Below, one piece after another: positions 7,101 through 19,100 of a stretch of DNA of 33,941 bases. Each line of letters starts with the position of its first letter. Position 1 is the stretch's first letter. Position numbers and translations under genes: made by a program. The DNA comes from Salpingoeca rosetta (Eukaryota; Protista; Choanoflagellata). The stretch lies in the NCBI GenBank assembly GCA_033442325.1, contig JAWQFM010000006.1:1961361-1995301 (forward strand). Direction: 5' to 3'. The notes under the pieces were generated by a model. The model was not told the DNA's origin, made no database searches, and saw nothing but the letters and a program-made list of their open reading frames with translations.

Positions 7101-10100
7101 GCATGGCCCGCCCAACGCTCGGCAGGCGGCCAGCAGCACCATCCAGTCCGCGATAGTGGCCCACGTCCTGCTGCACATTGTCCTCGTGGAGCGGGTTCAT
7201 TGGCACCTCGTGGTGGTCCAGGCCAGTGGCCACGCCCAGGTACAGGCTGTGGCGGTCCTTGGTGGGCGATGCGACAATGTGGCCAAACTGCTGCTCGCGC
7301 CGAAGTGCGTCCTCGTGCGCCTGCAGCTCCACATCCCGCTTGCGTCGCTGCTTCCGGCGATGCACCAGCAGCAGCACAACCAGCATGATGAGCACCACGC
7401 CGCCAACCACGGCAGGGACAATGGGAACAATGAGGGCAGTGGACCCCTCCGCTCCCGGTGGCGCCAGCGACACCGTTGACGATGTCGACGCGGCGGTTAT
7501 CGTCGTCGTCGTCGTACCAGTCGCAGGCGGCGCTGTTGTTCCCGGCCCAGCGGTCGTGGTCACAGACGGCATTGGTGACGCAGCAACCTGCGAGCCTTCA
7601 AAGTTGACCTTCATCTGGTCCTGCTGCACCGCATACGCGGTTTGGTCTGCAGAGCGGCCGTCAGCGTGCACGACATCCACGCCCACGCTGCCGCGCGAGA
7701 ATGTGATGCGCACCACCAGCGACGGCGGCACCCCCGCAAACCGCCACAGGCCGTCCAGGACAGCCGCCTCCAGCGCAGCAAGGCGCGTGGCATTGCCCAC
7801 AATTGCGTCATAGTCCAGCGGCAGCAGGAACGACGTTGTCAGGGGCTTCTCGTCCACGCTGCCGGGTTGATCACACACGCTCGTGTTTTGCACCACGCCC
7901 ACCAGCGGCGAGTAGCCCTGGGGCTTTGATACGGCAGCCGCCACGTGGGCGCCCTGCCGTGCTTGACCGTTGCTGTCAGCGGCAAAGGTGACGTTGGCGA
8001 GCTGCGAATCCAGCGCGGTGTCATAAGCAGGGGCATCGTCCACGTGACGGGTCATAAACAGGAGCCGGTCAGGGGAGAATGCGCCCTCCGTCGACACGGT
8101 CAGCTGCACAACCGAGACGCCCCCGCTGATGTTGGTCGGTGGCGTGTCACCCAAGGGAATCACCGTGCGATACAGCGACGGCGCAACGGCAAAGGGGACA
8201 GCGGCCTGAATCCACGCGCCCGCGTATCCGTCTGGTTTCCCCGGTGACAGCAGATCTCCAGCCAGTGGCTCCGCGAGTGTCCAGTTGGCTCGCTGTGCGT
8301 CGCCGGAACCCGCTGCTGGCTCAATGTCGAACACGATTGCAGTGTCGGTTGGACTCGCAGCTTGGTGCGACGCAGTGAGCGCGAGCACAGACACCTCCAG
8401 CAGGCAGCCGTCCGGGGACGGCAGCACTCGCACGCGCGGCGCAGACACGAAGCGCAGCAGGTCAAAGTTGACGGCTGCAAGGAAGGACACATCCAGCACA
8501 TCAATGTGACCATTGACATTGGCGTCCATGACGCGCTTCTCGTCTGCCGACAGCGAAGACCGGTTCACGGCGGGATCCACAAGCTCGCGGCCAAGGAAGC
8601 GAAGCAGGGCGCCCGCGTCCTTGATGTCAAACACGCAATCGCACAGCACATCACCCAGCATGCGCGGCTCTGGGCACGATGCAGGGTCGCATGGCGTTGC
8701 ACGCCGTGCACGCAGCAGTGACTCGCTGTCACGGGCAACACGACCATCAGCAGCGGCAGCAGCAACAGCAGTCGCCGTGGTGTCGACGGCACTGTCACGA
8801 CGACGACGACGACGACCGGGGGTGCTGGCCGTGCATGGTGTGGTGGTGGCGTTGCTTGCAGCCGTGCCGATAACAACATCGACGCTGCCAGCAACAATAG
8901 CACGCGGTGTGGGCGCGCCAATGGTCAGCTGCTGTGATGAGGCATCAGCGATGGTGTTCACAACGCCGTGAATGGCGGTGATGCATCCAGAAGTAGAGTT
9001 GGCACCATTCTCAGGCGCAAGAACGCGGAAGCGGAGCGTGGCGACGGTCAGGACGCCAACCGCAGCATTCTTCTGCAACAGGCCGCCAAAGGATGCCACG
9101 CCCGGTGGGCTGTTGAGAGAAGCCACAAACACGCCGCCTTCCCACAAGGACGACGTTTGTGCAATGGAGACCGCCTGAAGGATGGTGGGGTCGTACACAA
9201 TATCGAGATCAAGGGCTCCCAGCACACTGGCACCAGCGCTGACGCGCACGGGCACGTCGAATGTGGCGCCCGGCTGCTGTGCCGGCACCGGCACCCCAGA
9301 CAGCGACCCGAGATCAACATCCCCATCCCCGGCTTGCAGGTTCGCAGCAAACATCCGGCTCCCCATCGCGCCTCCTACCGTGGCCCGCACCACATACTCA
9401 AGCTCAACAGCGCTGTTCCCAAGCAGCGTCACTGCGCCACTCGCGCCGTCAACCGCAACGGCCCCGCTGCTGTCGCCCCTCACAGAGAACGCCACCAGCC
9501 CACCAATGCGTGCGCTCCCGCTCCCGCTCACATCAATCAGGTCAGCGTACTTGCGCCCGTCGCTCAGCACAACGTCCACCTGGCCCCGTGACACGTGGCC
9601 CACCACACCAACCACCGTCCCCGCAAGCGTCAGGCCCTCAAACCCAACAACACGCACAGACGTGTTGGTGGCAGCAACGTCGGCCCGCGCCACAAACTGG
9701 CTCACTGCGCCAGCCACGCGCGCCTCCACGCTCGCGTTCCCAAACGCCGTGCCAGCACCCGTGTACGACACAACCGTGCCGCTGCTCACACGCACCACAT
9801 CGCTTCCAGCAACCACGGAGTAGCTCACCACAGCCCCGTCCGTGCTCACGTCAACGCGCTCGCCGCTCGTCAGCACCAGCACCGTCTCCAGCACAGCCTC
9901 CTGCCACACCCCCGTGTCTGCGTATTGCTGCAGCTGGTGCACCTCCACACCACGGGAGCCGGCGTACGCGGGCCACGGCCGCAGCCGCGCCTCCACGCTC
10001 GCCGTGCCGACAACGGTGATGTTGATGCTGTGCGTCACGCTCACGTGGCTGAAGCCGATGGTCAGGGTGCCTGTGCCCGTGAGGCCGGCGCTGTTGGTGG

Positions 10101-16100: not shown

Positions 16101-19100
16101 AAGCACACGCCACGACGTCGCCGTCGTTGTTGGACACAGTGATAGGTGTGCTGTCCTCATCAAATGCAACGAGCGACACTGGCGAGTTCACGGCTTCGCC
16201 CGTCAAGACGGCGCTGTTCACCAGTTGGGCGGCAGGGATCATGGCAGCAAAGCCAACGGTCTGTGCTGGCGCGAGGAACACACTCGCGTCGCCCACACGC
16301 ACGCCATCGCGGCCCGATGACACGGCAGCCACTGGCGTCACGAGTGGCTGCTGCTTCTCCACGTTGAACAAGCTCAACACCGTACAGCTGAGAGCCACCT
16401 CCGCCGCTGTTGTGGCGCTTGCGTTGGCGCCCTGTGTCCATGCGTCCTGTGGCTGCACCGCAACCGTGAGGGTGAACAGGAGCTCTTGCTCTGGCGCAAG
16501 CTCGGGGCGGTCGCCGAGTGGCAGGCCGTTGCCGACAACGGTGCTGGTGCCCTCACCTTGCACTTGTCCATCCCACGCGCTGTCCACGCTCATCTGCGTG
16601 ATGACCAGCTTGTCTGCATCGTCAGCCACGCTGCAGCGGACCTGCCACGTGTTCACGGGGTAGTCACCGCCCTGCGCATACACGGGCACCTGGAACGTTG
16701 CGCCGGGTCGCACGGGCCTGTGCGGTGCACTGAACCACACGCCACCGCTCCCAGCAGCGCCAGTGGCCATCAATGGAGAGGAAGCCGGCGCTGTGGAGAG
16801 CGGCAGTGGCGGCGACGACACCTGCTGTGTGGGTGTGGAGCCAAGCCCATACGTCACTTGCACAGCGCGCTCTGTGGTGTTGGAGAACCACTCCTGTGGC
16901 ACCGACACCCGCGCCCAGCAGGCGCTGCGCGTGGTGCAGGATGCCGTGACAGCCGGCACGGACGAAGTGAAGTCGACCGGCGTGACTGCGATGGACACTT
17001 GCGTCTGCTGCGTGTTTGTTGAGTGCAAGGCATCCCGCACAACAAGGTGCACGTTGACCTGGGGCGCATCGTGCCACAGCCGCTGCGTGGCCACTTGCGC
17101 TTCCACGCTGACAGCGGGGCTGCGCTGGAGGGTAAACGCCGCCTGCGCCTCGGAGTCGCCAAGCACAGCGCGCAGGTTACCGTTGTCGGCGTTGAGTGCA
17201 TCGACAAACACACCCACTTGCCCGCGTGTGCCTGCCGGCGTCACCGTTGGCAGCTGTTGCTCAAGGAGGTAGCCCAGACCCGTGTTGCTGTTGACGGTGG
17301 CGAGCGGCAATGTCGCGTCTGGTATGCGCCCGCACTCGCGATCTGACGTGGCCGTGGGCAGGACTAGCTCCACTTCGCCTGGCTGGCACGCGGTCAGGTT
17401 GGCGCAAACCGTGTCCTGCAAGATGGTGCAGGCTGTCTTCGTGTACATGTCGCTTGTGCACACGGTGCAGTTGTCACACACGCGGTCACTTGTTGGTGTG
17501 GGCGCGGCGTCCTGGAATGTGCCCGGCTCACACGGGCCGCGGATGCGGGCACAGTCGCGATCGGATGTGGGCGTGGGCGCGGTTGTCTCGTACTGCGTAG
17601 TCGTGTTGCACTCACGCACGCGCTGGCACACGCGTGCGCTGCTCAGCGTTGGCGGGTCAAGCTCGAAGAACACGTTCGTGTCGCAGGCCGGAAGGCTGAC
17701 AAAGCACTCGAGCGAGGACGTGGGGTTGGCAAACAGCTGGAGCGGGTGGTATGGTGTCGTCAGGTCAAACGTGTAGGAGGTGGCGGGTCCAAGCTGCAGC
17801 TGATACATGAAGGGACTCCCAAACTCCACGGCGCCGGTGCTGTTGGAGATGCGCACAGCACGCGAGTCTGATGTCTGCGGCGGGCTGCTCTGATCCACCG
17901 TCACCTGCAGGATGGTGAGGCCAACGTCACCGAGGTCAAGGCTGGTGAACATGTCTACGCTGTGTGGCACGGGTGTTTCGTTGTCTCCCATGTCATCACC
18001 GCCTGAGGGAACCGCCGCCTCAGCTTGGAAGATGGCGCCGTTGAAGGTTGGCGCACCCTTGTCGGCGACGACCACTTGACCACGGGTGACTGCGCTATTG
18101 TCAAGGGCCGGGCGCAGGCCCGTGTCGCGTGATTCCACGTCGAAGAACAGGAACGTGCGCTCTGGATCGGGGACGGTGTTGCCAGCACCCAGGGGCGTCG
18201 CTGAGATCCTGAGCTGGCACGCCACGGCTGCATCTGCTCCGGAGGCAGGCGACTGCGCCACCGGCGTCACCGTCACGTTGGTGATGAAGTGCAGCTGCTT
18301 GAAGAGGACGCGGATCAGGTACACGGGATCAAAGTCATCCACACGCCCGTTGATGTTGGCGTCCATCTGTTCATAGCGGTCTCGGCTGTAGTCGCTGCCA
18401 AAGCTGGGGTCAAACGTGCGCTTGGCCAGGAAGGATTGCACGAAGCGCACATCTGCGAGCGTGAAGCAGCAGTCCTCGTTCGCATCGCCCAAATGGCGGC
18501 CACCAGCGCACGGCAGCCCCGTGCACGGGGCATCGCCAGCGCGGCGGTGGCGCTCACGTGGCGCAACAACAGGGAGCAGGCTCCGGCTCCAGCCCACGTC
18601 ATCGCTGTCGCTGACGTCAAGGCCAGCAGCGCTGCGGCGACGACGAAGGTTGCCGTCGAGGATGACCATGGAGACGTTGCCAGCAACAAACGCGGTGTCA
18701 GGCGCCACAATGTCGAGGGATGCATCGTCAATGAGCTCGATGATGGTGCCGCCGAGTGTGATGAGGGCAGGCGGAGCAGCGTCATCCGCAACGCGGAAGC
18801 GAAGCACGGCCACTTCCTGCGAGGAGCCAGACACGCCGTCTGTCGTCCCGCCAAAGAGGAGCACGCCAGGGGGATCGTTGGGGGTGACCAGGAAAAGGCC
18901 TTGGCCATAGGCGGAGCCCTGTGTCGCACTCACGTACTCGAGCACATCGGGTGGATAGGTGACCTCCAAGCGCAGACCAGCCACCACCTTGGCTGTGCTG
19001 GTGAGGCGCACGGGCACGTCGAATGTGGCGCCCGGCTGCTGTGCCGGCACCGGCACCCCAGACAGCGACCCCAGATCAACATCCCCATCCCCGGCTTGCA

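Follow-up and report, generated by a model that had tools for sequence, protein, structure and literature searches.

The stretch of Salpingoeca rosetta DNA analysed here (hereafter the window; 33,941 nucleotides, positions 1,961,361 to 1,995,301 of contig JAWQFM010000006.1, assembly GCA_033442325.1) carries on its minus strand a giant open frame, whose three dockerin-like segments (D1, D2, and D3) are the subject of this analysis. Pfam matches of the 6020 amino acids (aa) encoded corresponded to somatomedin-B, EGF, and TNFR-Cys repeats, TMEM132-type Ig domains (Pfam's fourth, fifth, and sixth), three Cohesin domains, and one weak Dockerin_1. The protein shows three TMEM132-like blocks, each terminating in a cohesin–linker–dockerin arrangement, and then a transmembrane helix and a cytoplasmic tail. 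Every module follows the same order: a cohesin, a linker of approximately 30–35 residues between two furin-type polybasic sites, a dockerin with its N-terminal leader, and a beta domain (Table 1).

All six Ca2+-type loops of D1–D3 could be read, with a helix predicted after each of them, and the loop and leader strings quoted in an earlier note on this DNA were all found at their places in the one minus-strand frame. Single-sequence searches of Pfam and PDB with the three dockerins gave sub-threshold matches only; against Dockerin_1 (PF00404, cut-off 22.9), D2 scored 20 bits and D3 13.8 bits, and D1 gave no match, which made a comparison at the family level necessary. The profile built from 18 paralogous dockerins matched the solved dockerins 4dh2_B (E 1.6e-7), 4fl4_A (1.3e-6), and 1ohz_B (1e-5) over both repeats, with the family loop Cys aligned to the bacterial Gly, and 10 of the 18 paralogues matched Pfam Dockerin_1 (best E 1.6e-8). 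An AlphaFold2 (AF2) model of D3, built from 140 family sequences with a predicted local distance difference test score (pLDDT) of 89.6, had dockerins as its best 18 Foldseek matches. With VIA-align, the 20 best entries (Z 9.3–7.3) were also dockerins, headed by 8ajy_B (Z 9.3, root-mean-square deviation 2.9, 73 residues aligned) and including 2ccl_B (Z 9.0); dockerin-containing entries extended through rank 27 (Z 4.8), 22 of them lying at Z 9.3–6.9, and the first unrelated chain scored Z 2.4. By family profile and predicted fold, the three segments are thus true dockerins of the EF-hand (type I-like) class, homologous to those of bacterial type I. The Gly at loop position 6 is absent from loop 1 of D1–D3, where Cys takes its place, and in loop 2 this position is Gly in D1 and D3 and Thr in D2; Cys for Gly6 marks a variant, without excluding dockerin membership. 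On the partner side, Pfam Cohesin (PF00963) was matched with E-values of 6e-13 and 1.4e-18, and the model of the module-2 cohesin matched type I cohesins (E ~6e-7, TMt ~0.7). Two other assignments were discarded: for a fungal CBM10-type dockerin, permissive Pfam scans listed only Dockerin_1 and EF-hand families and the predicted fold was helical and dockerin-type, and for thrombospondin type 3 repeats, no TSP_3 match was obtained and a helix follows every loop.

Leader and dockerin together contained four, six, and four cysteines in D1, D2, and D3, respectively. Each leader begins immediately past an R-x-R-R site and carries two of them (four in D2), and all the cysteines lie within approximately 33 residues of that site (within 25 in D1 and D3), the helices and second loops being free of them. 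Of the 64 cysteines between aa 801 and 5600, a region with a background Cys frequency of 1.3%, 14 are concentrated in three leader-plus-loop stretches adding up to approximately 85 residues.

The comparison was extended to 215 related dockerin modules from choanoflagellates, a sponge, and haptophytes. Position 6 of the first loop was Cys in 183 of these and Gly in 25, a recurrence that, with the covariation of the leader cysteines described below, goes far beyond chance. The numbers of cysteines in leader and loop were (3,1) in 125 modules, (1,1) in 49, and (0,0) in 24, and their sum was even in about 93% of the total. Beyond loop 1, no Cys was present in the following ~62 residues (helix 1, loop 2, helix 3, and the start of the next domain) in 178 modules, the remaining 37 having from one to three. 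In the (1,1) forms, the lone leader Cys mostly lies 7 or 8 residues before the loop, where the (3,1) forms have their third Cys, and the rare forms with two leader cysteines and Gly or Ser at position 6 retain a C-x4-C spacing. This spacing and pattern therefore point to a bond of loop Cys6 with the proximal leader Cys, and to another disulfide inside the leader.

This pairing was also reflected in the evolution of the family. In a mean-field direct coupling analysis (DCA), leader column 193 and loop column 206 gave the second-strongest coupling in the module. Along a tree built without the leader and loop Cys columns, the loop Cys state changed 14 times; the leader Cys followed the loop Cys in approximately nine independent contrasts, and the opposite was never seen in almost every random pairing (median p 0.004). 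Parity, joint gain and loss, and coupling therefore give good evolutionary support to a leader-to-loop disulfide, and the first Ca2+ loop of each dockerin is probably pinned by disulfides to its N-terminal leader. The earlier note had read the cysteines of D1–D3 as a disulfide-stapled eukaryotic variant. The staple itself finds support in the relatives, where Cys6 is conserved and covaries with the leader Cys, but it is not special to the giant protein. A large family has it as a rule, and only the second loop Cys is peculiar to this protein.

This second loop Cys was found at position 7 in D1 and D2 and at position 4 in D3. Neither a Cys at loop position 7 or 4 nor the combined patterns 2+2 (D1, D3) and 4+2 (D2) were present in any of the 215 relatives. 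The cysteine count nevertheless stays even, and the additional Cys probably replaces the leader-internal bond, with the leader tied twice to the loop. In addition, Leu occupies ligand position 3 in loop 1 of D3, a Ca2+-binding place taken by N, D, S, G, or T in all 215 relatives; the first Ca2+ site of D3 may be weakened, with the extra bond of Cys4 compensating.

The strongest coupling overall linked the cohesin to the dockerin and corresponded to a size swap between cohesin column 78 (Gly) and dockerin column 265 (Phe). Gly at column 78 was accompanied by Phe or Tyr at column 265 in 114 of 124 modules, and a larger residue at 78 by a small one at 265; six to seven independent contrasts went in this direction and none in the opposite one (p ~0.03). 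The coupled cohesin columns were 34–38 (the strand aligning to bacterial cohesin strand 3), 64–67, 77–84, 96, and 115, and the coupled dockerin sites were loop-1 positions 3, 10, and 11, loop-2 positions 8–10, and helix-3 positions 17–22. These sites make up the canonical binding face and lie near the positions that classically set specificity in the complexes of bacteria. The 100 strongest couplings included 18 between cohesin and dockerin and 8 between cohesin and post-dockerin domain, although the number of possible pairs is 1.7 times larger for the second kind. When the tree was taken into account, support was found for dockerin position 10 with cohesin column 37 (p ~0.03) and for two loop-2 pairs; the pairs of dockerin column 211 (position 11) with cohesin column 36 and of dockerin column 264 with cohesin column 38 were not significant. 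The earlier note had regarded loop positions 10 and 11 as recognition residues, and its reading of them (LA/DF, AN/TE, and IK/VL) was reproduced directly; position 10 does covary with cohesin strand-3 columns, position 11 less clearly.

In module 2, AF2 packed cohesin, dockerin, and beta domain together with a predicted template modelling score (pTM) of 0.72 over 440 residues, approximately 100 of them disordered linker, a value that, given such a disordered fraction, corresponds to confident inter-domain placement. Covariation and packing therefore support binding to the cohesin just upstream, which each dockerin, judged from these alignments and this model, appears to grip. As for the orientation, the two halves of D1, D2, and D3 share only 6, 5, and 4 identities per 22 residues, respectively, and the repeats of the family a mean of 5.4 and a maximum of 10, too few for the symmetry that a dual binding mode requires. 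Since the halves are so asymmetric, one binding orientation per dockerin is plausible from the sequences, as the earlier note had supposed.

The polybasic sites on both sides of the linker are also a family trait. At the site preceding the leader (site 2, R-x-[RK]-R), Arg was found in 138, 151, and 168 of 192 family modules, and in the polybasic columns of site 1 in 121–137 of them. The peptides between the paired sites are of low complexity, with a Gln run in module 2 (window 13648–13710) and an Ala-rich stretch in module 3 (window 8713–8796), and the linkers were modelled by AF2 as disordered (pLDDT < 50). A search of the genome yielded four matches to the proprotein-convertase P-domain above the Pfam cut-off (C1:1688627, C9:1065765, C13:164974, and C17:91974), whose genes are candidates for the enzymes acting at these sites.

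Taken together, the reading that we favour, and hold to be reasonably probable, is that of a surface receptor in which three disulfide-stapled dockerins clasp their upstream cohesins in cis around linkers excised by a convertase. In such a mechanism, folding and Ca2+ loading would come first, followed by formation of the disulfides; the Cys in place of Gly6 of the first loop would be bonded to a leader Cys approximately 7–8 residues upstream, and most family members would form a second disulfide inside the leader (C-x4-C). The dockerin would then dock in cis on the upstream cohesin through its canonical 8-3-6-5 face in a single orientation, and a proprotein convertase would finally cut out the linker, leaving four fragments joined by three Ca2+-dependent cohesin–dockerin clasps. 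With the staple in place, both the first Ca2+ loop and the N-terminus freed by the cut would stay folded.

Several observations weigh against this proposal. Taken singly, D1–D3 are below the Pfam cut-off. Odd leader-plus-loop counts occur in approximately 14 of the 215 relatives, about half of which become even when a helix Cys is added, the rest staying odd. A charge complement between dockerin position 11 (basic) and cohesin column 38 (acidic) had to be rejected, with 1.9 contrasts in the same and 2.0 in the opposite direction (p = 1). The contrasts were picked after the DCA ranking had been seen and their p-values are uncorrected, and because the pairs were chosen in this way, the covariation p-values are only indicative; moreover, the effective sequence number was only ~184 for 238–382 columns. 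Finally, the covariation fits cis binding and homophilic trans binding equally well.

The most probable alternative concerns the specificity of the three pairs. According to it, they constitute three mutually orthogonal codes, as in the earlier note, which had inferred from them an enforced subunit order; the cleaved fragments would assemble in one order only, without cross-pairing, even with paralogous modules of the same cell. Nearly all the covarying interface columns differ among the three pairs, in both partners, and the modules are only 26–37% identical in the dockerin and 34–49% in the cohesin. A block of 334 aa is near-identical (3 differences) between modules 1 and 3, and this identity stops abruptly inside the first cohesin strand, beyond which the cohesins and dockerins are ~35–50% identical; moreover, orthologous three-module proteins retain their own dockerin signature at each module position, and at least 19 modules of this type in the genome could otherwise cross-react. 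Nevertheless, divergence and module signatures are also expected from ancient duplication under purifying selection, and the boundary of the near-identical block, which could be due to recent gene conversion or to an assembly effect, would be a single event. In a 3 × 3 cross-score with DCA couplings trained without the modules of the window, the cognate assignment was the best when all the inter-domain couplings were summed, a result with a chance expectation of 1 in 6, but not with the top 10–80 couplings. Furthermore, no code is needed to enforce the order if the pairs form before cleavage, because the chain itself sets it. Different residues at positions 10 and 11 do not, then, demonstrate orthogonality, and we consider full orthogonality possible, though rather unlikely.

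A second alternative is that the dockerins bind in trans, either to the cohesin of a neighbouring molecule or cell (homophilic binding, for example in rosettes), to the TMEM132-internal cohesin-like domains, or to other proteins. Besides the covariation of adjacent partners, equally expected for homophilic pairing, the adhesion-type domains of the giant protein and the cadherin or phosphatase contexts of many paralogues would agree with it. However, the length and disorder of the linker suffice for cis binding, the AF2 model packs the three domains of one and the same module, and the two conserved cleavage sites flanking the linker make sense if the pair must hold a cut chain. On this balance, trans binding seems improbable to us. 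A more ambitious version of the code is that the modules of S. rosetta, at least 19 in number, make up a coded, cellulosome-like surface assembly in which cut fragments rejoin only their cognate partners and the extra loop cysteines tune the joints, a proposal to which we give little credence. If true, such clasps, orthogonal, single-mode, and stapled by disulfides, would allow giant receptors to be built, put in order, or even exchanged among molecules, with the extra cysteines setting how strong each joint is or how sensitive to redox conditions and Ca2+. Finally, that the cysteines serve as free or redox thiols, as metal ligands replacing a Ca2+ ligand, or in bonds to cohesin or beta-domain cysteines linking the fragments covalently could be suggested by D3, with Leu for the position-3 ligand and Cys at position 4, by the odd counts of a few family members, and by the family-invariant Cys in the first strand of the beta domain after each dockerin, but it is very improbable in view of the even counts, the scarcity of cysteines past loop 1, the joint loss of leader and loop Cys, the second-ranked coupling between them, and the lack of conserved cysteines in the cohesin proper.

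Table 1. Location of the features of the giant open frame in the window (positions are those of the 33,941-nucleotide stretch).
Feature	Window positions	Amino acids	Strand	Basis or remark
6020-aa open frame	6439–24501		minus	predicted type I membrane protein
Near-identical 334-aa block, module 1	19006–20007	1499–1832	minus	
Cohesin 1	18646–19083	1807–1952	minus	Pfam Cohesin match, family alignment
Polybasic site 1, module 1 (RRRR)	18634–18645	1953–1956	minus	
Polybasic site 2, module 1 (RHRR)	18541–18552	1984–1987	minus	abuts dockerin leader
Dockerin 1 (D1) with leader	18286–18540	1988–2072	minus	
D1 leader, CTGLPC	18525–18508	Cys 1993, 1998	minus	
D1 first loop, DANEDCC	18486–18466	2006–2012	minus	Cys at loop positions 6, 7 (aa 2011, 2012)
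D1 loop 1	18451–18486		minus	
D1 loop 2	18328–18363		minus	
Beta-rich domain after D1	17632–18285		minus	
Cohesin 2	13723–14142	3454–3593	minus	Pfam, family alignment, model
Polybasic site 1, module 2 (RRRR)	13711–13722		minus	
Polybasic site 2, module 2 (RARR)	13636–13647		minus	
Dockerin 2 (D2) with leader	13351–13635	3623–3717	minus	Dockerin_1 20 bits, E 8e-4; model pLDDT 81–92
D2 leader, CQPAC and CATC	13623–13609 and 13590–13579	Cys 3627, 3631, 3638, 3641	minus	
D2 first loop, DANGDCC	13557–13537	3649–3655	minus	Cys at loop positions 6, 7 (aa 3654, 3655)
D2 loop 1	13522–13557		minus	
D2 loop 2	13393–13428		minus	
Beta-rich domain after D2	12697–13350		minus	
Near-identical 334-aa block, module 3	9244–10245	4753–5086	minus	
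Cohesin 3	8815–9321	5061–5229	minus	Thr-rich tail included; Pfam, family alignment
Polybasic site 1, module 3 (six Arg)	8797–8814		minus	
Polybasic site 2, module 3 (RARR)	8701–8712		minus	
Dockerin 3 (D3) with leader	8449–8700	5268–5351	minus	model pLDDT 89.6
D3 leader, CDPASC	8691–8674	Cys 5271, 5276	minus	
D3 first loop, DVLCDCV	8652–8632	5284–5290	minus	Cys at loop positions 4, 6 (aa 5287, 5289)
D3 loop 1	8617–8652		minus	
D3 loop 2	8491–8526		minus	
Beta-rich domain after D3	7732–8448		minus	
Transmembrane helix	7363–7437		minus	cytoplasmic tail after it

The beta-rich domain that follows each dockerin showed DCA couplings to it (e.g., columns 259–395 and 269–306), and Foldseek aligned the whole module to the cohesin dyad 3l8q, so that this domain may resemble a cohesin or an Ig domain. 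The assembly has a gap of 796 N upstream of the giant gene (window 26164–26959), which accounts for a dip in the composition profile.

In the S. rosetta genome (55.4 Mb, 68 contigs), at least 16 further modules with cohesin, linker, dockerin, and beta domain were found in other giant open frames, and one of these paralogous loci encodes exactly the S. rosetta protein PTSG_03507. Near-identical copies at C5:1864163-1868287 and C12:49584-53720, with a few differing residues in linker and leader, are by their sequences a recent duplication, and the stretch upstream of a dockerin at C24:798505-803375 reads N/X where its cohesin would be expected. Beyond this genome, a word-index protein search with the module region recovered only three giant relatives, which justified an exhaustive search with a profile of the whole module. 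The latter gave 6151 representatives at E ≤ 1e-3, of which 382 reached E ≤ 1e-30, and almost all the 150 best matches covered the whole module. Among its members are proteins of S. rosetta, Hartaetosiga gracilis, the sponge Sycon ciliatum, and the haptophytes Diacronema lutheri and Prymnesium parvum. The haptophyte modules have two leader cysteines, loop Cys6, and one Cys past helix 1, and their presence raises the question of an ancient origin versus a transfer between protists.

With respect to known systems, the likeness to bacterial type I pairs (PDB 1ohz/2ccl, 4dh2, and 4fl4) extends to the two tandem Ca2+-loop-plus-helix repeats, the fold (Z ~9), the profile matches (E 1e-7 to 1e-5), the type I-like cohesin partner (TMt ~0.7), and the cohesin-binding face, in which dockerin positions 10, 11, and 17–22 covary here. 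In contrast to bacterial type I dockerins, those described here have Cys instead of Gly at loop-1 position 6, a Cys-bearing leader before the loop, and strongly asymmetric halves; in contrast to the bacterial pairs, cohesin and dockerin lie on one polypeptide with two putative convertase sites between them, the host is a eukaryote, and the protein is a predicted membrane receptor and not an enzyme or a scaffoldin. Some dockerins of Ruminococcus flavefaciens reportedly have a single binding mode and an "intramolecular clasp", and the related entries 8ajy, 5m2o, and 5n5p are found among our structural matches. Asymmetric repeats that imply one orientation and extra contacts stabilising the N-terminal segment against the dockerin body are common to both, but the clasp of R. 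flavefaciens is a non-covalent stacking between the termini, whereas here the tie would consist of one or two disulfides reaching the Ca2+ loop itself. There is also a likeness in principle to Notch, cut by furin at S1 into a Ca2+-stabilised heterodimer, and to the autoproteolytic GAIN/GPS and SEA domains: a chain is cut on its way through the secretory pathway, and its fragments are kept together non-covalently, possibly as a mechanical fuse. There is no homology to any of these, however; the holding device here would be a cohesin–dockerin pair, cleavage would remove an entire linker peptide, and three joints would stand in series.

Regarding the cohesins, those of choanoflagellate and sponge cadherins and of TMEM132 are already published. 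Cohesins have been reported in the TMEM132 family, with dockerins undetectable in vertebrates (Sanchez-Pulido & Ponting 2017, PMC6030884). The TMEM132-type Ig domains recur in our protein, which has relatives in Hartaetosiga and the sponge Sycon, choanoflagellates and sponges being groups with cohesin-bearing proteins (coherins); dockerin partner, cysteines, and double cleavage sites are absent from that description, and the module described here is also present in haptophytes. Literature searches returned no description of an EF-hand dockerin bearing cysteines, eukaryotic ones included. The present analysis adds the family-wide evidence for a leader-to-loop disulfide, the double loop-Cys pattern, unique so far, and a test of the proposed specificity code, for which support was only partial.

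In bacterial cellulosomes, cohesin–dockerin pairs are the textbook means of holding the components together, and their bonds rank with the strongest non-covalent ones between proteins. Our results extend the picture to eukaryotes, in which dockerins, and not cohesins alone, occur widely among the nearest relatives of animals, in a sponge, and in haptophytes; they adjoin the cohesin that is their likely partner, inside receptors with the architecture of TMEM132. In this lineage, the first Ca2+ loop seems to have been re-engineered, from Gly6 to Cys, to receive a disulfide from the leader, and a disulfide-locked dockerin of single orientation could be useful for protein engineering. As the leader begins at a conserved convertase site, a testable model arises in which giant adhesion receptors would be cut and yet stay assembled, which also provides a lead as to what the cohesin-like domain of TMEM132 binds and does in animals.

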